From Podarcis bocagei (Eukaryota): a stretch of DNA of 64,000 bases. The notes beneath the pieces are model-generated. The model was given only the letters and a program-made list of their open reading frames with translations. It did no database searches and was not told where the DNA came from. Below are positions 12,825-64,000 of the stretch, in pieces. A program made the position numbers and the translations under genes. Within the stretch, counting starts at the first letter, position 1; every line of letters starts with the position of its first letter. The stretch lies in assembly GCA_964188305.1 (NCBI GenBank), contig OZ076885.1; one strand, given 5' to 3'.

Positions 12825-13190
12825 AGATGGTTCAGTTGGGTGGGAAGGAAGAAGGGAACGAGGCAGCAGGTGAAGAGTCTGCTTCACATTCAGAACGTCC
12901 CAGTTCAGTTCCCCAGCATCTCCAGGTAAGGCTGAGGAAGCCTGCTGCCTGAAACTGTGGAGAGCCGCTGTCACTTAGTATAGACCAGGGTTTCCCAAAC
13001 TTGGATCTCCAGCTGTTTTTGGACTACAGTTCCCATTGTCCATGACCACAGGTTCTTCTAGCTATGGATGATGGGAATTGTAGTCCAAAAACAGATGGAG
13101 ACCCAAGTTTGGGAAACCTTGGTGTATACAGCACTGGGCTAGATGGACCATTTGTATGACACAGTATAAAGAGTGGCTTCTTACTTCCAG
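12825..13190 (+). mobile_element. Degraded Squam2-like SINE interrupted by a hAT MITE (12986-13121)
   Basis: CCAGCATCTCCAGGTA...CTGGGCTAGATGGACC SINE body. The MITE has long TIRs CAGGGTTTCCCAAACTTGG and near-TSD GTATAGAC/GTGTATAC. Confidence 0.7.
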
Positions 13191-35880: not shown

Positions 35881-36365
35881 CAGTGTTTCCCAACCTTTTT
35901 TGGGCGAAGGCACACTTGTTTGATGAAAAAAATCTCGAGGCACACCACCATTACAGCCCCGTGACGTCAGCGCACAGCGTCACGCCGGGAGGGACGCACG
36001 AAAGTGTAAGTTTCAATTTTTTCCCTCCCCCTTGCCGGGGAACCTCCAAGCTTTGGGGGGTGGGGGGGAGGAGGCAGCAAAGCAAGGCAGGAAGGAGAGC
36101 GCGGCTTGGCTGGGTGAGCTTTGGCAGGGGCAGGGAATGAGAGCTGCGAGGCGGGCGCTGTGGACGGAGGCGCTGCCCACCGAGCTCGCAGGCAGCCAGG
36201 CAGGCAGACGGCGAGAGCCCCGCGCTGGGCGGCCTCTCCTCGCCGCCGCCACCCTGCCTCTCGCCGCCCGACTCGCCCGCCTCCCTCCAGGCAACATCTC
36301 GCGGCACACCAGGCAACATCTCGCGGCACACTAGTGTGCCGCGGAACAGTGGTTGGGAAACACTG
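35881..36365. mobile_element. Non-autonomous hAT element with GC-rich cargo
   Basis: TIR CAGTGTTTCCCAACC/GGTTGGGAAACACTG with perfect 8-bp TSD GCCTACTG. Confidence 0.93.
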
Positions 36366-43107: not shown

Positions 43108-43257
43108 TTAAAAGTAATCTCTTCTTCTGCTGTCATCACTAACAAAGGAAGGGTTGTATTGGCCAGGGTAGATGCAGGAGTGTCGGGATCCCGGAAGACC
43201 TGTGTAAGGTGGGTACAGCCCGTTTCTTTCTAGTTCAGGGTTCCTTGGGTTGGTTGT
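43108..43257 (-). CDS. HEG1: HEG1 terminal coding exon (KRIT1-binding C-terminus ...SRRRDYF)
   Basis: 150 nt, 49 aa + TAA at 43108-43110, phase-0 acceptor ttctag. Confidence 0.95.
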   Translation of the reverse strand, partial: TTNPRNPELERNGLYPPYTGLPGSRHSCIYPGQYNPSFVSDDSRRRDYF

Positions 43258-46200
43258 CTAGAAGGGTAAGACATGGACACAGAAAGGAAAGGGGAAAATG
43301 GTTCAATAGTCAGCACTTATCCTTTCTGGGATTTTAATAATAATACATGAAGGTACAAATGCTTCCAATAGATAATATGCTCTTCTAATAGAGATTAAGC
43401 AGATGTGTTCAATAATAATTGTTTGGGCATTCTAGGCCACCACTGAGGAAAAAAATAATAGCTAGTGATCTGTTTGGGTTTTATGTATATAATGCACTGC
43501 TTTGAAATTTTCGATGGAATTGTGGTATATAATTTTATACACACACACACATATATATAAATAGATAAACAACATTATCATGAAATTAAAACAAAAATCA
43601 GAGCATAGAAGCAGTTACTATTATTATGTCTATATACTGCCACCATGCATGACAAAGGTAAACACAGTAATATCTCTGAATCCCTCTTTTCACTTTTATT
43701 TCTCATTCTCTTCCAAACCAAAAAATCTGGAATGCCAAAGCTTTGGAAACAGAATTATACCAATCAGATGCAACCTAGGAAAATATATTGCTGCCCAATA
43801 CTTCCTTAGCATACCGGAAAGCAAGCTTCTCCCACCAGTTGTTACTGGCATGAACAAATCATAGCCATTGCAACCCAGACCAATGAGTACATAGAAAATA
43901 CAGCACATCTGTTTTGTACTCTGATGCACATGTAGATATTATGGAGAACGCCTCCAGGGCAGCTATTTTGGGTGGAGCACAGCCAGGTAGGAATCAGTGA
44001 TGTAGGACAGTGTTTCCCAACCTTTTTTGGGCAAAGGCACACTTGTTTCATAAAAAAAATCTCGAGGCACACCACCATTACAGCCCCGTGACGTCAGCGC
44101 GCAGCGTCACGCCGGGAGGGACATGAATTGCTAGCAAATTACATAATCACCTCCTTGAGGGCTGGCTCATCTTCTCCGAAGGCAGAACCCCATTAATTAA
44201 CAGGACAGACTCACACCATAGCCAAGACGAGGGGGGAAAACCTCAGTCATGCACAGTCATGCACATGTGGGGGCTAAATGAGGACGAAGACCGGGCATAG
44301 AGCAGGGTTCAAATCACCCCACCTGGCCAGGACAATCCCTGGGTGCTCCCTTGGGCCACTCGCCTGACCCACCTCGCAGGGCTGTTGTTGTGAGGATAAC
44401 ACAGGGAGAACCACGCGTGCCCCCGGGAGCTCCTTGGAGGAGAAAGCGGGCGATGAATGCAATGCACGAAATATATGAGAGGCGACCAGGTTTTGCAGGT
44501 GAGGGGCCCCCGCCAGCCTCCGCTTCCAACACCCGGCGCAACGACGCCGAAGTTTCCCCCCGGGCTCGGCTCGGGGAGCAGCGCTGCTCCCCCCCGGCTC
44601 CCCTTCGCCCTCCCGGCTCTCTCTGCCGCCCACTGGGGACCCCCCTCACCTGCCAAGTCCGGAGCGCCGGTGGAAGTTGCATGCATGCATGCAGGGCGCC
44701 GCGTTGCCATTGCATTGCACTGCACTCCCTGCAACGCCTGCACGCATGCATTGCCTTGCACGCCCGCCAAGGGGTCTCCCCGCGGTCCGATGCGTCCCCT
44801 CCGGCGCGGATGCAGCATTGCAAAAATACCCCCCCCCGACGCAGCCCTACCTGGGGGGCAGCCTCCGCCTCCGCCGCTCCGCCTCCGCGGGGATCCCCGG
44901 GCTCCATCCTGCCGCCCGATCTCCGCGGGGGCGCAGGCAGGCTGCGCGGGGTCTGCGCGGAAGAGCCCCTGCCCGCCCGGCCGCCGCCGCGCTCATTCCA
45001 TGGCCGGGAGAAGAGCGCTTCTGTCAGAGCTGCTTGAAGATCCCAGCTCACAGAGGATCACGCTAGCCAGCGATCATTAAGTAAAAGTCTTTATTGAATT
45101 ACAGTTTCCATTCTCACGCTGCTGCGCGCAAACTCTACGTCTAGTAGCTAGATCGGCGAAGCTCCGTCTGAATCTCCGCCCCTTGTGCACCAACTTAATA
45201 TCCTAGCCTTGCTCCACCTTTTCCGCCTGACTGTCCTCCTCTGGGTCCCTCTACCCCCCGGGGCTTCTTCCTTCCGGGATTCTTCTGACGCTGACCCGGA
45301 CCCTCCTGCCTCCTTGCGCCGGGCTTTAGGACCTGGTTCCCTTTCGGGGCTGCTTACTGCGCCGCCTTCCTCTGCATTTGAACTTGGCGCGCGCGCCCAA
45401 CCTTCCACCTTCCTCTTAACCGTTTCTTCGCTCCCCGATGGAGGTGTGGCCACTCCTGACTCATGCCCTCCCTCCTGTGGCGAGCTGCCAGCGCTTCCCC
45501 CCTGGCTCCCTTCCTCTTCCCTGCTTCCTGGCGGTGACGCTGGTCCCGATTTCCAGCTGCTCCCCCCTGAGTCCCTTCTGGCTCTATCTTCCTGGGGTGC
45601 CCCCCTTGACCTGGCCACTGGTGCTCCTTTCTGTGAATCCTCTGATTCACTGGAAAGACTAGGAGATCTCGGGTCGTCGTCATCACTCATCTTTTCTTCT
45701 GCCTCCTCCCCTTCGCTCTCTGTTTCCTCCCTTGCCCGTGCCTCTGCTCCTAAACCCCTGACAGCTTCAAACAAAACGCCCGGCCCGCCAGGCCACGCTG
45801 GGAAACGAAGTTCGCGCACCCCGCGCGGGCGCGGAGCCCAAGGGCGAGAGGACTACGGAGCCCGGCAGCCCCCGCGCCGGGGACGGAGGGGGAGAGGCCG
45901 GGTGCAGGGATGGAGGGACGGGTGGGCGAGCGAGTGAGTGAGTGGCAGCCGCCAAGCCTTGGCCGAGAGCCAGGAAGGGCCTCCCCGGAGGAGGAGGAGG
46001 AGGGAGGCGCAGAGCGGGAGGGAGGGAGGGAACCCCAGGGGTCATCTAGTGACGGCGCCCCAATCAAAAATTTGACTTAAAAAAAAAAATCTTTCGAATT
46101 TTTTAATTTTTCCCGCGGCACACCAGGCAACATCTCGCGGCACACTAGTGTGCCGCGGAACAGTGGTTGGGAAACACTGATGTAGGAGATACAGTATGCT

Positions 46201-49200
46201 GCTATCATTGTCATATGGCTGCTAATCCCAGAGATTATAGGATGAAGATAAAGGAGACCTGGATACAAATTTCCACCCAGCAATGAAGCTCATTTGATGA
46301 ACTTGGGCTAATCATTCTCTCTCAGCATAACTTAGCTAGAGAAGGGTGGATTCCATTGATTTATTGGGCAAAGGGGAGGCTATGAAGGTAATGAACAATA
46401 TTCCTGGCCCTACCCAAGGCCAAGATTTTAGTAATCTGTCATACTAGAGAGACAAAGACATCACTGTTGGATGTTATGGGGATTGTTACATCATAATTCA
46501 TGTACTATTTTGATGCTATAGCGGCTGTATGCTCTGTGGCAGCCTGTAGAAGGCGCGCCTACCTGCATGCATAGACATAGTTTTGCCACTAGGTGGCAAT
46601 GGACTTAACTGGAGCTAGGTGAAGTCGAACGTTTCCTGTGTCTGTTCTGTTCTTTATGGAGAGAGACAATAAAGTTCTCATTCAGCTGAAACCTTCCATG
46701 GCAAGATCGGCATATGAGGCCTGCAGGAACATACACTGACTGCACAACAGCCCCTGCTCAAAACCAATTATCTTGACTGTAACCTTGGTTATATATCATT
46801 GAGTATATAACCTTTGGACTTTTGTTAAAACGCACATGTACAAGCTGAGGATTAGTTACCATATAGTAAACATCTGTCATCTGTAGTAGGTTTTTAGTGC
46901 TCCCATTCTCTTGCATTTCAATGGTTTCTCTCCCCCAGTCTTGAGCTCGAGGGTTTTTGGGATACTCAGCATATGGCGACATCTGGAAATCTCCACTTTT
47001 GAAGATGAGTTTGCTTATGTCATTTTTATTCTTCCTGGGATAAAGAAAGAAAGAAACATTTATATGCAAACCATATGAAAAGGACAGGAGATAGCTATAA
47101 AACTCCCATGCATCTTTTTCATAACCATAAGAGAGCCAGTGTGGCATAGTGGTTGAACTTGGATGAGGGAGACGCAGATGCAAATCCTCACTGAACCAGC
47201 CATGAAGCTCATTGAATGTTGAATGTCCTTGGGCCAGTTGCTCTCTCTTTCTGCACAGCCTTGCTTACAGGGGTGCTGTGAAAACACAGTTATGACTGGG
47301 GTGGGGAATAGGGGTACGCAGATATGTTTCCACATATGTTTGAATTTTCTTTTTAAAAAACCTCATGAAACATCATAGTTTTACTGCAAATTTCTCATAT
47401 TTTTTGGTATGAAATGTTGCCTAGTATAGTGGTACCTCGGGTTAAGTACTTAATTCATTCCAGAGGTCTGTTCTTAACCTGAAACTGTTCTTAACCTGAA
47501 GCACCACTTTAGCTAATGGGGCCTCCTGCTGCCACTGTGCCACCAGAGCACAATTTCTGTTCTTATCCTGAAGCAAAGTTCTTAACCCGAGGTACTATTT
47601 CTGGGTTAGCGGAGTCTGTAACCTGAAGCGTATGTAACCTGAAGTGTATGTAACCCGAGGTACCACTGTATACTCATTTTTGCAAAGACATTTCATTGAA
47701 TATAAGCACATTTTGCATGTTATTTTCATGGATATATGCATTTCCATGCACAGTTGACCCCTTCATGGATCACTGCCTTGTTGTGGCGAAGGGGCTTGAA
47801 TAACTCAAAGAAGCTATGAGCTATGCCATGCAGGGCCACCCAAGACAGACAGGTCATAGCCGAGAGTTTAGACTAAATGTGATCCACCTGGAGAAGGAAC
47901 TGGCAAACCACTCCAGTATTTTGCCAAGAAAACTCCATGTACATAAAAAAGGAGAAGCTTTGAGAAGAAAGTGAGAGTTTCCAAGGCATGCTCTGGTTCT
48001 CATGGGGTCACGAAGAGTCGAACATGACTAAGATGACTAAACAACAACACTGTTGACCCTAGTGTATGTGTTCTTGTACGCATTATTTGGCTAGAGAATT
48101 GCATCACAAAATTAAGGAAAATTTCTTTGAAGGATAGCTGTGTTTCATTTCATGTGTCATTTCAGAAAGTGCTTACTAAGTAAGTTTGCCTTAAAATGCA
48201 AAGTGCACCAAATTTCTCTTCCATCCTTAGCAGGGAGTCAGATACTACACTGCTCTAGTATGCTCTTCAGATAAATGGTGGTGGTGGTGGGGAAAACAGT
48301 GACAATATCCCTTTTTTTTTTTTTTTTTGAAAAATCAAAGAAGCTTCTGCCAGATCTTACTTGTGCTTTTCAGTATTTGTGATATCTGTCAAATACCGCC
48401 AAAACATTTATCTTGATATGGTTTATATACAACTCTGAATCATTTGGACATTATTAATTTTTGCACAATCACAAGAAACATTTTAAAGGTGCAATTTCAT
48501 TCAACGAAAGTATAATCAATAGATAAACAATTTCCCCATGATGGGTATTTAGCGTTTTATTTTAAAAACAGGCACTTGGCTTAGGATACCTACTGGCAGC
48601 ACGTGACAATGAGAGCTATCGCCATGATGAGCAGAAGTCCCCCTCCAGCTGCTGCGATCACAATGGTGATGAGCTGATACGCTAAAGCAAAGAACAGAAA
48701 CAATATTGCTTCGATGGAAAATTGTTCATCTTTTATGTATAGGCAATAATGTGAAACTGTCACCTTCTTGATGCCTGTAAAGATTCCCTTATCTATAACC
48801 TCGGAGATGCTCTTATGTCATGGAATGCCTACAAAGCCACCATCAGGTATGGGATAAAGATTCACTGATGTAGCTTAGCTTCTTTGACAGAACTGGAAAA
48901 ACTAGTTAGCCTATGAGGAAATGCTCACACAGAGACAATTAACAGGTACTAGTTGATATACACATATTTTGAAACGTCTGAACTCATTGCTGGCTGGTTT
49001 ACGGATTCAATTCAGTATGCTGTACTGGTTTTGTTTTGACATATAAAGAACTAAATTGCCTGGCTTCAAATTACCTCACAGAAATTCTCCTTCTGTATGA
49101 ATCCTCCCACCCAGACAATGAAGAACTTTCAACAGGGCCTGCTGAAAGCACCATTTTACACTGACACCACGTTAGCTTTCAGTTGATGAAGGCCCTTCTT

Positions 49201-53494: not shown

Positions 53495-56400
53495 AAGCTA
53501 CTTTCTCTCTCTACTGTTCCCTGACCCTGCATAAGAGTCACATATACTCCTCATTCACTCGCTTGCCCTGGCAGGACTTCAGAAATCTAGCTCTGGCTCC
53601 TCCCCAGGTGCCATGAACTCCTGAAAATTGCCAACAAAGAGGGCATCCTGGACCATAATTCAACCATATCTCCCAGTTTTGCTGGGATTACTAATGTAGG
53701 TATCCCCAGAGCTGGTCAAGGACACAGCTGTTGCTTAATGGGGCGCTTGTGTAGGAGTTCCCAACCAATCTAGAGTGCTGCAGAATTTAAGTTAAACCAA
53801 CCTTGGTGTTGCTGCACTTAACTCTGGCCTGCTCTGGTCAAGAGAGGTTCAGAGGCTGTAGTCTGGAGCAAGTGGAACTGCATGTTGTCCAGTTTGTGGC
53901 TGCTGCCAGCAAATGACTGAGTGAATTGGTTGATTCACTCCTGTGTCCATAGAAAGGTGAGAGAGGATTCCTCTCAGAGGATGGGTGGAGGAAGAAGCCT
54001 TGATGATCTTGGGAATGGAGGGGGTTGGTGGAACACAGATAGAAGCTGGATGATTGTGGAGCAAAGAGAGAAAGGCGTTGGATGGGGATGGGGGTAGAAG
54101 GATGTTGGATGGCCATGCAGAGAAGAAAAGGAGCTGGGGGTTATGGGGGGAATAAAGAGAATAAAGATATAAGTGAAAGGAGCTGGTTAGGGAATAGAAA
54201 AAGAAGCACAACATCCCAAGTGCCAGGGACCATACTCCCCAGAAATTGTGGGGCATCTGTATCTTTTAAAGTAAAATTTATTTTGGGATTGAGGGGCCTT
54301 GGAGCATAGGAAGAGGTATAATAAGGTGCTGTCTTGGTTTTGGCCTCCACTGATTTGATAAATCACAAGTGAATGTGAGATTCTACAAGAGGTTTTTAAT
54401 TTTTGTCTTTATGATGATTTGTTTTATAATTTTACTTATTATATAGATGAAAGCAGACTGACGAAGTTTCCTATTCCAATGTTGGAAATGGTCCATGTGA
54501 ACAAAGCAACACTTTCAGGCTAATGCTGAAGGTGTATTGGTCAGGGGCGCCCCCAGAGTGTGCAGGGAACCAAGGGGACGGAAATCAGGATCCGTGTTCA
54601 TGTTTGAGCCTCTGCAAATTCAAACTGAATGCCTGCAGAGAACTACAGAAATAAAATGAGGGTTATCTCAGAGTGAGCACAGATGTCAGATTTCCGAAGT
54701 TCTTCTGTCTCTCCATGTTTAATTAATGTCTGAGGTGTAGACTAATGGAAGGTCACCGCGGCTACTTCCATTAACAGAAAAAGTGAGGTCATATTTCTGA
54801 AATCTAGACAGGGTCTAGGCTACATCCACATGGCTTAGTTAGCATGGAGTTCCTAAACAAGCAGTGGGGATAGTATTTTATTTTGGACTGAACTGGATTC
54901 AATCTAAAAGCTATCCAATAGGGTAATTAAATGCGACTGGATCATGTTTCTAAATGTGTTATCTGCTTTTCAGGATGAAAAAGCAATTCACACTTTGGAT
55001 CAGCTCAATTGGAACATTGTGAAGGATCCACCAAAACAGCCTGTGAATAAAAAGCAATTATCTTTTTTTTACTTCCTTTGGAGATCAGACAAAACAGAGA
55101 CAGAAATAACCGCACTATGTCATCTCTAAAAACTGAACTTTCGCCACAGGCATATCAGACCCCTCCCTGGCCTGCCCCCTTTTTATTCTTTTCACTGGAT
55201 CTTTCTGGCTTACACAGCATGCTGTGTAAAAGGATAATATTATTGCTGCACTGAGAGCAAGCAAGAGACCGTATCCCCAATTTCTACTGTAGAAAAACGA
55301 GCACTGGGAGAAGGAAACCTAAGCTTTTAATACTTATTCATAGGGCTTAGCACGCATAGAAATACAAGAAATCACACTGATCTGCGGAATATCCTTTGAA
55401 CTGGAACCAAAAGATTAAAGATGAACCCCAGCGATCCAGCTGTACAATGCATAATACCTCTGCAGGAATGATCCAGTTTGTTGTATTTGAAGTATCCAGC
55501 CTGGCACTTGCAAACTGCAATGCCGTCCAAGTCCACACACACAGAAGTTTCTTTGTCGCATTCCGGATCTTTGTGTTTACACAGACCGCCAACTATTGCA
55601 AAAAAAGAACATTGGGAAGGTCATTAACTAGGCGGAGGGAAAGTGCACCTTCACTGGATTCTTTCTCTACAGATATCAGAATTAGATATTTTGTGAGCGA
55701 GGGATGGGGAAAACATGTGGCCCTCCAAATGTTGCCAGACAGCAGTTTACACCATCCACAGGTTTCCTACCACTTGCTGGACCCTTGGTCTCTTTTGAAA
55801 TGCCACCATTGCTAAGGTACCAGGCTGTACAGCTGTTGCTCATCTCTTAATGACAAAAAACCTAACCAGCTGATCTTGCTAATCCAAGCATTCCCAGTGT
55901 GTTGGTTATAGCTGTGTACAGTGGTACTTCAGGTTAAGTACTTAATTCGTTCCAGAGGTCCGTACTTAACCTGAAACTGTTCTTAACCTGAAGCACCACT
56001 TTAGCTAATGGGGCCTCCTGCTGCCACTGCGCCACCGGAGCACAATTTCTGTTCTCATCCTGAAGCAAAGTTCTTAACCCGAGGTAATATTTCTGGGTTA
56101 GTGGAGTCTGTAACCTGAAGAGTATGTAACTGAAGCTTATGTAACCCGAGGTACCACTGTATACTACTAACTACTGTTGTAATTTTTAGATCTGTGTTTT
56201 ATGTTATTTGTGCATGATTTTATGCCAGCGTAGACATCACTCATGCCCATGCCAGCGTAGATGTCACTGAGAAAAAAGTGCAAAGGTGCTGGGAATGTAG
56301 GCTTGGGAGAGCACAACTTTGACTGAGACTCTGCCCTGCCCTGTGATGCCTAAAATCTTCCTCATAAAGGCATATGGAAGGCATTGAAGCGTCACTCTTG

Positions 56401-59610: not shown

Positions 59611-62600
59611 ATTGAATGCCAAGGAAACCTAACTTTTCTCCACAACAGTTAAATAGAAACATGTCTTTTTATTTAAATGGAAGCTTTGTTTCTAAGGCCC
59701 AAACTAGACATTACACAGCAGAACATTGTTAACTGCCAATCATACATTAATGTTAGAACACAGGAAGCTGCCTTATAACAAGTCAGGTGATTGGCCCATC
59801 TAGCTCAGTATTGTCTACAATGACTGGCAGTGGCTACTCATGGTCCTCCAGCCATTGTTGGACTGCAACTCTCATATTCCCGGACTATTGGCCATGCTAG
59901 CTGTGGCTGATGTATGGTTGAATCCAACAACGTAAGGCACATCTTCTCTACTCCTTTAAAGTCTTGAAGTATAAAATCATGGATTGGATAAGTTAGTTGA
60001 ACTTCGGTTTAATTGAAATTGATAACACAAGTTAAACATGACTGGCTTCAGTTTCATTGATCTCAATGAGAACCAGTTCCTGCAAACCAGCAAAGTGAGG
60101 TTAAATGTATTTCTGGTAATAAGAAGCAGCCGGTGCTAGTAAAACCTTTTAAAATAATAATAACAAATTAAGCTAAATGTGGCTTTATGTTTTATTAAGA
60201 AGTTTGCCCCCACCCCCGGTCCCTTCAGTTCTCTTACCTAAATTGCACTTTCCTTTCTCCATCTGGTAGCCCAGGGAACACATGCAATGGAACGAACCTT
60301 GTGTGTTAGTACATGTGGCCAAGGCCGGGCATGGATTAGACAGACACTCATCTACATCTGAAACAGAAGGAAAAAGCCACAGCCTTTCGAATGGAAGTCC
60401 ACCAATCCACTTTTCATTGCTGTAAAGCACTGATGTAAAGGGCTGCCATTATTCCTCCATTACCTGTACTGCAGTCCTCTCCCTGCCAACCAGGTGAACA
60501 CTGGCACTGGAATTTGTCCATCAAGTTATCCACAATGCATTTCCCATTATTAAGGCAAGTCTCTGCGGTGCACACATTAGCTGTGAAATAAAGCATTTGA
60601 AGAATTAAGTCAGGATCAACAGATGTGACCAAATTCACCTCTGAACCCCCACATTCAACAAGCAAGGTAGTGCACTGCACCTTTCACCCGCATGCACACA
60701 AAAGCTTCCTCTTCTGGTACCCAGAACCAACAAGTCAAGCTGAATAGACTATATGCTGCTGGGGTGATCACTCTCCAAAACCATGCAATAAATGGCTACT
60801 GCTGGTTTCCCAAAACACATGGAGAACTAGCTTCCACTCATCCTGCTGATCTGAGTCTCACTTCTGGCATTCTGAAGGTGGGGTACCTCTGGAGCATTAC
60901 CAGCAATGGGCACCTTCAAGCCAAAAAGAAGTGATGCGCTTCACAATGTAGCCTTACACCTTGGAGACAAAGCGCTATTCAGCCTACATCGCAAACATAA
61001 TTTTGTGCAACAGGCAGGCACAGCGGAAAGGACTTCAACCATAGGTCCTTGCCTTGCTTAAAAGCTGGAGAATATGGCCAGCAAACACTGGCACACTCTA
61101 TTAACTAAAGGAGTAAATGCATTATAAAATAACTATAGTACATAAATTATGCCACAGACACAAAGTTACACTATTGTACAACTGGGACATGCAACAAGAG
61201 GTTGTATTGTAGAGAGCTCCAGGGTTCTAGAGAGATGGGATAGCCATGCCCTTTTTTCCTGCAGATTCCATTTTATTATTCTAGATGATCCTTCCCCCAC
61301 CTCAACAAACATTCAACATTGTGTGGACATTGCTGGGTTGTTTTGAGACAGGTGTGACTGTGTCCCCTTTCAGTTTCATCCCCTATAGATGCTTTATGTG
61401 TGTGTGTGTGTTTTTAAAAAACTTACCCCCCCCCCCAATCTCCAAATAATTTTTGATTCTGAGCTCTGGAGTAGATGGTTTCTGTTTTTTGTAGAAAGGC
61501 ATAACCACTTTTTTTTTTTTAAAAAAAGATAAATCTACCAAATGAATTCCCATCCAAAAGTGCAATGATACAGCACCATTAAATCCATTTTTCGTGTTAT
61601 ACCCATTTCCATCATTTCTCAGAGAAGGCTTACCTTTTCCACGGGAAGCTGGAAATGTCCTTGGACTTCCTACCCATGCAAATGTAGTGGCTTTGGTGGG
61701 AACCGGTGAAGCAGAAACGGTCCCTGCAGTGGTTTTGCTGGAAGGAAACATTTTGGGAGGGTGGGCAGTAGTGGCTCTGGAATCAGTGGTTTTAGAAGCA
61801 GTGGTAGTGCTCGTTTCCATCCCTTTTGTGGGAGTTCCAGTGGCATAAAATGGCGTCTTGGTGGGAAGGGGAGGACGTACTTTCTGAGGCTTTGTAGTGA
61901 CCACATAATCCACGCTTGATGCCAACGTAGGCAATCCTAACGTTGTGTGTGCTATATTTACAAGGTTTTTTCCTGTGGTTACCCCCACCAAACTGAAGGC
62001 ATCCTCCAGAGTGGTTGTATATGGTAACGAAGCAGTTGTTGCTTTGGCTGTCTCTGAAACTGTGGTACTCTGGGCCCTGTACGTGGGAGACGTAGTCGGA
62101 ACAGGAGGCATTTTTCCAACCCTGGTCCCTGGGAGGGAAACATTTTGCCCCTCCAAGCCCTTGGTTTCATCTAGGGATACTGTCATATGTGACAAGTGGT
62201 CTGTGAGCTGTTCAGTAGTTTGGGTCAGAATAAGAGAAGATCCTGTTGTCCCCAGATCAGTGCTGTCCTTCAGTGGGTGTGTCCCAGTCTGGTTGCTGAA
62301 TGGCCTGTTGGAGCTTCCAGCTGTGGGTGGGTCTGTTCCAGTTGTCCCTTCAGATGCAGCCATAGAAACACTGCCTTCCAAAGGCTCACTAGGCTGCAGC
62401 AACGACGGTGTTGAGGAAAGAGGAGGCAATAAAGATGAGGATGGGGGCAGCGTGGGCAGTGCTGTTGGCGACTGCCTGCGTGAAAAAGTTGGCAAAAGTG
62501 TTTGAGGGGAAGGTGAAAGCAGGGTTGGGAAAGCAGAGGAAGACAATGGAAGAGGGGATTCTGAGGTCGAAAACAGAGTTGGCAGCTGAGTGGGTGGAAG

Positions 62601-63037
62601 TGAATCCTGTTTCAGTGACACTGAAGAGGAAGGTGTGAATGATAAGCCGCCAGCAGGTGTCAGTTCGGATTTCAGATATAACTGAGTTGCATGCAGCTCA
62701 CTGACTGTGGAAGAGTAGGCTGGTGTTTTCAGGGCGTGTACAGACAACGGTTCTGTTGACGGTGTGGAGAAACCCATGTTGCCGGAGGACATGTTGCTTC
62801 CTCTGATCTGGGTCACAGAAAATGAGGACCGTGCTGACTCTGAAGGGCTGGAAATTTCTGCATAAAAAGTGGAACTTTCTGATGAGTCAGCTGATGTGCT
62901 GCTTTTTGGAATAGACAGTAACGTCCTTTCTCCGCCCCTTGTGAAAGTGGTTGAAATGTACGTGCTGTCAGTATGAGAAACAGAGATTATTTTTCCAGTG
63001 TCAGTGCTACTCATTGGCTGGTAGTCTGTTCCAGTGT
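43108..63037 (-). CDS. HEG1: Heart of glass 1, 3' part: exons 63037-61634, 60580-60464, 60357-60238, 59505-59426, 58733-58675, 57643-57483, 55592-55458, 49771-49729, 49579-49542, 48681-48594, 47034-46860, 43257-43108. The 5' exons lie beyond the window.
   Basis: YISTTFTRGGERTLLSI in the Ser/Thr exon, two EGF exons, TM YQLITIVIAAAGGGLLLI, tail KNKNDISKLIFKSGDFQMSPYAEYPKNPR...YTGLPGSRHSCIYPGQYNPSFVSDDSRRRDYF*. All GT-AG and frame continuous. Confidence 0.96.
44008..46179. mobile_element. Non-autonomous hAT element (2172 bp) with captured CpG-island cargo and a nested solo LTR
   Basis: Same TIRs and subterminal sequence as 35881-36365, with perfect 8-bp TSD ATGTAGGA (44000-44007 / 46180-46187). 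Confidence 0.93.
45022..45763 (-). mobile_element. Solo LTR (742 bp)
   Basis: TGTCAG...CTGACA ends, perfect 5-bp TSD GCTTC, AATAAA on the minus strand near 45090. Confidence 0.85.
46472..46749 (+). mobile_element. Possible solo LTR containing a CTCF-like motif
   Basis: TGTT...AACA ends and internal AATAAA, but no clear TSD. Confidence 0.4.
46860..47034 (-). CDS. HEG1: HEG1 penultimate exon, cytoplasmic tail
   Basis: KNKNDISKLIFKSGDFQMSPYAEYPKNPRAQDWGRETIEMQENGSTKNLLQMTDVYYM, 175 nt, phase 2-0. Confidence 0.95.
47130..47310 (+). mobile_element. Degraded Squam3/MIR-like SINE
   Basis: GAGAGCCAGTGTGGCATAGTGGTT head and CCTTGGGCCAGT core. Confidence 0.6.
47427..47668 (+). mobile_element. Tc1/mariner MITE (about 242-bp family)
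   Basis: TIRs and TA TSD. Confidence 0.9.
47761..48047 (+). mobile_element. Bipartite (internally deleted) BovB-derived retroposon
   Basis: BovB 5'-UTR-like sequence (GGATCACTGCCTTG...GGAGAAGGAACTGGCAAACCACTCCAGTAT) joined to the BovB 3' end with (AAC) tail. TSD CACAGTTGACCC/CACTGTTGACCC. Confidence 0.75.
48594..48681 (-). CDS. HEG1: HEG1 transmembrane exon
   Basis: YQLITIVIAAAGGGLLLIMAIALIVTCCQ, 88 nt, phase 1-2. Confidence 0.94.
49542..49579 (-). CDS. HEG1: HEG1 exon
   Basis: CPFGLGGFNCGNP, 38 nt, phase 2-1. Confidence 0.92.
49729..49771 (-). CDS. HEG1: HEG1 exon
   Basis: ACEDGYKLVNDTCVS, 43 nt, phase 1-2. Confidence 0.9.
50666..51513. mobile_element. Non-autonomous hAT element hosting a Tc1 MITE
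   Basis: Imperfect TIR (ATGGGCTGGGCGGTAT / ATATTGCCCAGGCCTA) with perfect 8-bp TSD GAGGAGGC. Confidence 0.78.
51193..51434 (+). mobile_element. Tc1/mariner MITE nested in a hAT element
   Basis: TIRs and TA TSD. Confidence 0.92.
52095..52312 (+). mobile_element. Degraded Squam2-like SINE
   Basis: tRNA-like head and TATAAAGCAGCTTTCTATGTT tail. Confidence 0.55.
53456..53494. repeat. (CCAG)n microsatellite
   Basis: Read directly. Confidence 0.95.
55458..55592 (-). CDS. HEG1: HEG1 EGF-like exon
   Basis: GGLCKHKDPECDKETSVCVDLDGIAVCKCQAGYFKYNKLDHSCR, 135 nt. Confidence 0.93.
55919..56159 (+). mobile_element. Tc1/mariner MITE (about 242-bp family)
   Basis: TIRs and TA TSD. Confidence 0.9.
56552..56792 (+). 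mobile_element. Tc1/mariner MITE, related subfamily
   Basis: TA|CAGTGGTACCTTGGTTTA...TAAACCGAGGTACTACTG|TA. Confidence 0.85.
57483..57643 (-). CDS. HEG1: HEG1 exon
   Basis: QLGIMQVSVLSTFSLVSNVTLFEVASTVRSHIRACKAPTQTCQFISKLTLLHR, 161 nt, phase 2-1. Confidence 0.9.
58553..58602. repeat. (TTA)n microsatellite
   Basis: Read directly. Confidence 0.95.
58675..58733 (-). CDS. HEG1: HEG1 exon
   Basis: LNNSLSTLPGYYTSTVKASR, 59 nt, phase 0-2. Confidence 0.9.
58990..59023. repeat. (GT)n microsatellite
   Basis: Read directly. Confidence 0.95.
59426..59505 (-). CDS. HEG1: HEG1 exon (SEA-like region)
   Basis: VRTFVGQFNTTGGQYSEFQVEEAIMNM, 80 nt, phase 1-0. Confidence 0.88.
59548..59611. repeat. Compound (CT)n/(AC)n microsatellite
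   Basis: Read directly. Confidence 0.93.
60238..60357 (-). CDS. HEG1: HEG1 calcium-binding EGF exon
   Basis: DVDECLSNPCPALATCTNTQGSFHCMCSLGYQMEKGKCNL, 120 nt. Confidence 0.95.
60464..60580 (-). CDS. HEG1: HEG1 EGF-like exon
   Basis: ANVCTAETCLNNGKCIV...CQCSPGWQGEDCST, 117 nt. Confidence 0.93.
61634..63037 (-). CDS. HEG1: HEG1 large Ser/Thr/Pro-rich exon
   Basis: 1404 nt, phase 1-1, mostly within ORF 61383..63014. Acceptor ttttag at 63038, donor GTAAGC at 61633. Confidence 0.93.
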
Positions 63038-64000
63038 CTAAAATACAAGCAAAAATTATTATTAATTCTTAGCATGAAATTTCTACTGATACAGATTGGG
63101 GGCCCCAATAGCAGTAATAGTTTCAGATTCCATATGTAATAAAATTAAAACAAAAAATATCCATAAAAGTTTCATTTTTTTAAAAAAAGCCTCAAGGTGG
63201 CAATTATTGGTAACTTCTGTTATCATTTTATATGAATTCATGGGCATGGGAGGTCTGATGGCTTACGTTACAACTGTACACAGAGAGAAAAAATCCTAGA
63301 CAATAATCATGGTAGGAAGGAATATTAACAACAATTAACTAAGACAGCAATAGGCTATATACTCTTCTTGCCAATATCTTCTTGTTCTTACTGAGAAAAA
63401 GTGACTATTGAAGTAACTCACAATATTGGACTGAGCTTCTGCATAAAATGAGTTGTAAATACGTCATTTTATGTTGCCAGCCGATAAGAGATGGTGAGTA
63501 AATATCATTAAACCAAATGGGATTTACTTATGACTGGACATGCATAGGATTAGGTGTTAAGACTGCAATGCTATACATGCCTATTCAGAGGTAAACCCCA
63601 CTGGGGGTTACACTCAAGGAAGTGTCCACAGGATTTCAGTCCAAAACTAACCCTAACCTTTTACATTTATTGCTTCATTTCGCTTTTCTCTTACATACTT
63701 TCTAAAAAGTGCCAAGGATAGCTTATGACAATAATCAATAACTCAAAACAAATTCCTTAAGTACAATTCACAGTATTAAATCCAAACTTTTTTTCCTTAA
63801 ATCTCCTAACTAATATCAACAATTACTTCATCCTAACCTCCTTAAGATTTGGAGAAATGTTTTACAATGCTTGAGCTATGGCTCTAAGATTGGCAAGCTT
63901 TTCTGGGAAATAAATTCCAGAGAATTCTTTCAGCTCTTCTAGTCCAGAATGCTCCCAGCTGGGGACCTGATGAACTCACAAATCTGTCTGTTCTCTGACG

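Follow-up and report, generated by a model that had tools for sequence, protein, structure and literature searches.

Does a transposon in the last intron of HEG1 supply the first exon of a soluble KRIT1-binding micro-protein, or is it carried there as a passive passenger? The locus lies in a window of 64,000 nucleotides from Podarcis bocagei (contig OZ076885.1), which was the whole stretch of DNA analysed. An earlier note on this DNA had proposed that promoter-like transposon DNA leads to a short coding exon which, after splicing to the terminal HEG1 exon, would give a 68-aa protein able to compete for KRIT1. The locus is a Pack-type hAT element with a potential chimeric first exon, and this class of element is already known in animals. 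We consider it probable that the element is a passive passenger of the HEG1 intron and that HEG1 is made normally; the soluble HEG1-tail micro-protein appears unlikely. The coordinates of the features are collected in Table 1.

Table 1. Features of the HEG1 3' end and of the intronic hAT element (positions in the window).
Feature	Coordinates	Strand	Detail or basis
Penultimate HEG1 exon, cytoplasmic tail, ...LQMTDVYYM	46860-47034	minus	sequence reading
Last HEG1 intron, phase 0	43258-46859	minus	donor ATG/gtaact at 46860/46859, acceptor tag/ACA at 43258/43257
HEG1 terminal coding exon, 49 codons and stop (43110-43108), C-terminus SRRRDYF	43108-43257	minus	translation
Non-autonomous hAT-type element, 2,172 bp, 15-bp perfect inverted ends CAGTGTTTCCCAACC	44008-46179	.	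sequence reading
hAT end common to both window copies, 98.6% identical to 36297-36365	46111-46179	.	local alignment
Other hAT end common to both copies, 96.5% identical to 35881-35995, includes TGACGTCA	44008-44122	.	
Second copy of this family (485 bp, flanked by the target duplication GCCTACTG), with the family ends and an unrelated GC-rich cargo	35881-36365	.	
CpG-island-like cargo, part 1, GC 0.725, CpG o/e 0.79	45764-46050	minus	
Solo LTR, 742 bp, TG..CA ends (TGTCAG..CTGACA), HEG1 orientation	45022-45763	minus	
180-codon ORF in the LTR (MSDDDD...), intact	45151-45690	minus	
Poly(A) signal (AATAAA) within the LTR, sense to HEG1, 5' of the putative exon, conserved in L001	45090-45095	minus	
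CpG-island-like cargo, part 2a, putative first exon, GC 0.789, CpG o/e 0.91	44851-45021	minus	
Donor GT of CAG/GTAGGG, 7/9 matches to MAG/GTRAGT, phase 0 from ATG 44907	44849-44850	minus	
CpG-island-like cargo, part 2b, GC 0.70, CpG o/e 0.81	44481-44850	minus	

HEG1 terminal exon and last intron

HEG1 lies on the minus strand of the window, and the span under study contained the 3' part of its last intron and the terminal coding exon. The acceptor of the terminal exon was read as ...cttctag/ACA, which gives an exon start at 43257. The last intron is in phase 0, because the penultimate exon ends with ...TAT ATG/gtaact at 46860. The exon start, the phase-0 acceptor and the C-terminus SRRRDYF, on which the proposed micro-protein depends, were all recovered as the earlier note had described them.

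The extreme C-terminus of HEG1 had been named as the binder of the KRIT1 FERM domain, and the comparison with the crystallised HEG1 peptide agreed with this. The last 26 residues of the terminal exon showed 23 of 26 identities with PDB 3u7d_B ('Protein HEG homolog 1'; E=9.4e-13), and the terminal YF was kept. A peptide of these C-terminal 26 residues (C26) is enough for binding to the KRIT1 FERM domain with a Kd of 1.2 uM, and this binding depends critically on YF (PMC3461514). A second partner, Rasip1, binds HEG1 at human residues 1327-1335 (PMC4733052). The Rasip1 site spans the last exon junction; a peptide made from the terminal exon would then lack most of this site and, because the site is cut at the exon boundary, might be KRIT1-selective.

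The intronic hAT element

The short terminal inverted repeats of hAT transposons start with YARNG. The ends of the intronic element, CAGTGTTTCCCAACC at 44008-44022 and 46165-46179, follow this rule, and they are flanked by an 8-bp target duplication without mismatches, ATGTAGGA, at 44000-44007 and 46180-46187. The presence of a hAT element in the last HEG1 intron, as claimed before, is confirmed by these 15-bp inverted ends and the 8-bp duplication. No transposase ORF was detected inside 44008-46179, either in the ORF list or with Pfam. The second copy of the family in the window also had an 8-bp duplication. The two copies were alike only in 115 bp and 69 bp of their ends, and their cargo was unrelated. 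At up to two mismatches, the end motif occurred five times in the window, compared with 0.25 occurrences expected by chance, and four of the five occurrences were exact, two per copy. The hAT transposon is more than a chance pattern.

The insertion looks young, judging from the perfect ends and duplication and from the 96.5-98.6% identity between the ends of the two copies. Because it looks young, there is no conservation that would argue for function. Among animals, 370 Pack-TIRs were reported in 100 genomes, with hAT as the commonest superfamily (208 of 370), and at least 30% of the Pack-TIRs examined were transcribed as chimeras (PMC8277862).

CpG-island-like cargo

CpG islands were defined by a length above 200 bp, a GC fraction above 0.5 and an observed/expected CpG ratio (o/e) above 0.6. 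Two parts of the cargo, 46050-45764 and 45021-44481, had this composition. The CpG o/e of the flanking intron was 0.12-0.24, compared with 0.79-0.91 in the cargo. Such a composition would fit a germline-unmethylated state or simply the young age of the insertion. The cargo had 70-79% GC, few stop codons and long ORFs on both strands, and GGGCGG motifs were located within 100 nt upstream of ATG 44907. The cargo may plausibly have been captured from the promoter and first exon of a host gene. For a source gene, no protein resembling the exon-plus-intron ORF was found in the word search or among 1.84 billion cluster representatives, and Pfam gave no family match for the cargo ORFs or for the LTR ORF. 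The region 44480-44290 gave the by-eye impression of a squamate SINE, a reading that was dropped when sensitive local BLAST turned up no further copy in the window.

The earlier note had described a CpG-rich promoter tract at about 46050-45770 'continuing' at 45020-44910. The composition of this tract was upheld and its continuity was not: a single cargo is split here by a 742-bp solo LTR.

The nested solo LTR

The identity of the solo LTR is new here and was missing from the earlier reading of a 'promoter tract'. A 5-bp target duplication, GAAGC, was found at 45768-45764 and 45021-45017. The LTR module occurred with the same boundaries in other, unrelated contigs, at identities of 90% (L001), 79% (L003 and L004) and 76% (L002). 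On L004, a Podarcis lilfordi chromosome, two LTR copies in direct orientation were 99.7% identical and bracketed a gene with RT (RVT_1), RNase H and integrase domains, and a duplication, CCTGA, was present around the whole unit. Because of its ends, the GAAGC duplication and the homology to these paired LTRs around RT and integrase, 45763-45022 is a solo LTR.

The ORF of the LTR showed dN/dS values of 0.18-0.19 between copies, compared with about 1-2 in shifted frames, which points to purifying selection among copies. For this ORF, no match of 90% identity or more was on record among proteins, and an exact look-up was also without a match. Beside the AATAAA of the LTR, further sense AATAAA and ATTAAA motifs were present elsewhere in the last HEG1 intron. 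An acceptor-like ttttgtttgaagctgtcag/G was observed at the LTR edge.

Putative first exon and frame match

ATG 44907 stands in the context GGCAGGATGG, with A at -3 and G at +4, and is followed by the 19 codons MEPGDPRGGGAAEAEAAPQ and the donor CAG/GTAGGG. Each element of the proposed exon, namely this ATG in strong Kozak context, the 19 codons and the phase-0 donor at 44850, is present in the DNA. The conceptual splice from 44851 to 43257 resulted in 68 aa with a highest 15-residue Kyte-Doolittle mean of -0.32; it contained no hydrophobic stretch, consistent with the earlier description of a product having neither a signal peptide nor a transmembrane segment. The caveat about two upstream ATGs also held, as both are real. 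ATG 45001 reads M-E-stop and is itself in a strong context (CCGGCCATGG), and ATG 44996 lies in another frame, which runs to 57 aa after the conceptual splice.

Donor-like sites were taken as those with at least 7/9 matches to MAG/GTRAGT on the HEG1 strand of the element. Five such sites were present in the cargo, and nine ATG/donor pairs were both open and in phase 0. A better donor, CAG/GTGAGG (8/9), was found at 44649, also in phase 0 from ATG 44907, and this pair is one of the nine. Because nine open phase-0 pairs occur in the same cargo, the in-frame ATG/donor pair is unremarkable, and it is no more than chance would give. The donor at 44850 and the strong HEG1 acceptor are each good sites. 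Most likely the ATG, the 19 codons and the donor would be a by-product of a stop-poor, GC-rich cargo.

RNA and protein records

In contig sets labelled as RNA, from three related organisms, 0.60-0.76 of the HEG1 3'-end words were found. The same sets contained 0.22-0.46 of the sampled cargo words, of which query the LTR alone makes up 0.39. Because the highest share (0.46) is above that of the LTR, some non-LTR cargo is in RNA too. Cargo-like sequence is transcribed somewhere. The shares are not specific to this locus, since the words could stem from the source locus or from further copies of the LTR. The shares of 0.37-0.46 were considered as evidence of exon expression and rejected as such, since the LTR accounts for 0.39 of the query and the words carry no locus assignment.

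The protein collections searched included ORFs called on assembled sequencing runs. A word search showed no chimeric HEG1-tail protein among the called proteins of 27-86 aa carrying the tail; this search and the word search with the exon-frame ORF passed over candidates of 87-134 aa. The HEG1-tail query matched a read-through fragment from a penguin and, from other species, two Logan fragments, and nothing else. The length-free search of the exon-frame ORF covered cluster representatives at 50% identity only (1.84 billion). The absence of a chimeric or exon-frame protein from these collections is a weak negative.

Explanations of the locus

In the passenger reading, a young non-autonomous Pack-type hAT with about 2 kb of CpG-island-like cargo sits in the last HEG1 intron, and its cargo is interrupted by the solo LTR in HEG1 sense. 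The ATG, the 19 codons and the donor are real motifs, which on splicing would be in frame with the 49-residue KRIT1-binding tail, and the whole element is probably removed along with the intron. If the cargo is transcribed, low-level and mostly non-functional chimeric or LTR-terminated RNAs would be expected, and no selected micro-protein. The architecture of the locus, the intron phase, the CpG content and the identity of the LTR are established, and we infer that the cargo lacks a function. We think it rather improbable that chimeric RNA of one kind or another could be detected.

The position of the start sites would matter for any such RNA. In an RNA from the 46050-45764 tract, the first ATG would be that of the LTR ORF, followed by the LTR poly(A) signal, and both would precede ATG 44907. 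Both upstream ATGs would be part of any RNA that begins in the LTR or anywhere 5' of 45001. A clean leader for ATG 44907 would result only from starts within 44995-44908. Counting against the passenger reading, the CpG-island composition, the GGGCGG motifs and the sense LTR could each act as a promoter. Three further observations weigh against it, namely the rate of chimeric transcription of Pack-TIRs (PMC8277862), the cargo-like RNA in relatives and the good quality of both the donor and the HEG1 acceptor.

Alternatively, the cargo may form its own short transcription unit, in which 46050-45764 drives an RNA that has its first ATG at 45690, the start of the LTR ORF, and ends at the poly(A) signal at 45095, so that neither ATG 44907 nor the HEG1 exon is reached. 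We regard this as unlikely. The sense strand is free of ATG between 46045 and 45690, and the AATAAA is conserved in L001, but the promoter is putative. The LTR ORF is intact and under purifying selection among copies; however, the protein records contain nothing that reaches 90% identity to it. The segment 46050-45075 would make up roughly half of the cargo query, which agrees with the RNA shares of 0.37-0.46, although these shares carry no locus assignment and may derive from the source locus or from LTR copies elsewhere.

The proposal of the earlier note was that a promoter in the cargo, either the CpG remnant at 45021-44908 or the sense LTR, gives a transcript spliced from 44851 to 43257, and that the resulting soluble 68-aa tail competes for the KRIT1 FERM domain. 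This we hold to be very unlikely. The motifs are exact and in frame, but frame matches are common in the cargo, and the ATGs at 45001 and 44996 lie upstream of the start codon. The CpG-island-like composition speaks for a promoter, but the upstream CpG tract is parted from the ATG exon by the 742-bp solo LTR with its sense AATAAA, and intragenic transposon CpG islands are usually methylated.

On the protein side, the exon keeps 23 of 26 residues of the crystallised KRIT1-binding peptide, including YF, and C26 is sufficient for binding (Kd 1.2 uM, PMC3461514). The peptide would be without most of the Rasip1 site (human 1327-1335, PMC4733052), which would make it KRIT1-selective. However, the 68-aa peptide would probably be disordered and is likely unstable, and selection or silencing would probably act against a dominant-negative HEG1 tail. 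Cargo-like RNA in relatives and the frequent chimeric transcripts of Pack-TIRs (PMC8277862) favour the chimera, whereas no such protein is on record in the collections searched. A functional decoy protein seems highly improbable. We give hardly any credence to its fullest form, in which the promoter of the cargo or LTR fires in endothelium and the 68-aa tail titrates KRIT1 from junctions as a natural, transposon-born, KRIT1-selective decoy.

It is also very improbable that the insertion perturbs HEG1 by intronic polyadenylation or exonisation, giving isoforms that lack the KRIT1-binding exon, because the sense AATAAA at 45095, the acceptor-like ttttgtttgaagctgtcag/G at the LTR edge and the several donor-like sites stand against other sense AATAAA/ATTAAA motifs already in the intron, strong canonical splice sites and the harm that loss of the KRIT1-binding tail would do.

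Significance

The solid result is structural: a young lizard Pack-type hAT family with CpG-island-like cargo, one copy of which holds a nested, sense-oriented solo LTR just upstream of a functionally critical HEG1 exon. The HEG1 intron is therefore a handy place to test how often such cargo works as a promoter. A chimera that was in fact made and translated would exemplify something rare, a dominant-negative micro-protein created by a DNA transposon, and its target would be HEG1-KRIT1, a well-mapped vascular signalling complex with relevance to cerebral cavernous malformation. The read-out to expect would then be the induction of KLF2/KLF4 (PMC8103725).

Comparison with known systems

The complex of the HEG1 peptide with the KRIT1 FERM domain (PDB 3U7D/4HDQ; PMC3461514) resembles the proposed one in the homologous 26 residues of the terminal exon, with 23 identical residues and the critical Tyr-Phe end. 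The binder known so far, unlike the soluble form proposed here, is either a synthetic peptide or a tail attached to a transmembrane protein. The cited HEG1 papers make no mention of a natural soluble HEG1 isoform. Alternative first exons initiated by transposable elements or LTRs are similar in having sense promoter-like transposon DNA and a donor upstream of a host exon with a strong acceptor; the present first exon is predicted from sequence motifs.

Retroviral accessory genes such as MMTV sag and HIV nef overlap the U3 part of the 3' LTR. The nested LTR module is similar in that it holds an ORF under selection, and the reading frame of the full-length P. lilfordi copy continues without a stop from the internal part into the 3' LTR. 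It differs in that the LTR ORF has no sequence or family similarity (no Pfam match).

The closest likeness is to the Pack-TIRs of Tan et al. 2021 (PMC8277862), in whose text no lizard occurs, and to plant Pack-MULEs. In these elements, as here, intact ends and a target duplication surround non-transposon DNA, and the second window copy, with family-typical ends and a different cargo, strengthens the likeness. Capture is deduced here from composition only, and the parental locus was not found. The cargo of the HEG1 element also differs in its size, about 2 kb compared with a median of 224 bp, in its CpG-island-like composition and in its nested solo LTR.

Sequence features of the hAT copies and HEG1

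In both window copies of the non-autonomous hAT family, the CRE-like palindrome sits within gtgacgtcagcgc.cagcgtcac of the conserved end. Potential enhancer or promoter activity may thus reside in the end of the transposon. The second copy carries a GC-rich cargo unlike that of the intronic copy, and ggcaacatctcgcggcacac is duplicated internally in it, adjoining one end. The degenerate match may stem from a related element that is older than the family. The open frames of the upstream HEG1 exons include a Ser/Thr/Pro-rich, mucin-like exon of 561 codons, EGF-like cysteine patterns and a transmembrane segment (...ITIVIAAAGGGLLLIMAIALIVTCC).

Features located in the window and in related contigs
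Feature	Location	Strand	Remarks
CRE-like palindromic motif TGACGTCA	window 44085-44110 and 35958-35983		conserved hAT end, both copies
Degenerate hAT-end match CAGGGTTTCCCAAAC	window 12986-13000		2 mismatches
Second hAT copy, 485 bp	window 35881-36365		~7 kb downstream of HEG1 stop codon
Upstream HEG1 exons	window 61386-63068, 60188-60683, 55375-55620, 48593-48817	(-)	open frames
LTR-family ORF	window 45151-45690	(-)	counterparts in L001, L002 (contigs with further LTR copies) and L004:10001-10540 (Podarcis lilfordi chromosome)
AT-rich flank	L001:1-278		flank of closest LTR copy, Logan contig

The ORF of the LTR family

The flank of the closest LTR copy contains an internal repeat of ~100 bp (ACACC..ATTCGAAATAAGCCCAATC) and has no relation to the window.

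The LTR-family ORF is protein-coding and under purifying selection. Comparison of three copies with each other gave dN/dS of 0.18-0.19, against ~1-2 for both shifted frames. The differences between copies were enriched at third codon positions (25/43 and 69/125). A Pfam search of the ORF matched no family, and the only relatives detected came from Logan contigs (assembled from sequencing runs) and Podarcis lilfordi. In the full-length element of the latter, the frame runs uninterrupted from the internal sequence into the 3' LTR, and in this the ORF resembles a U3-overlapping accessory gene.
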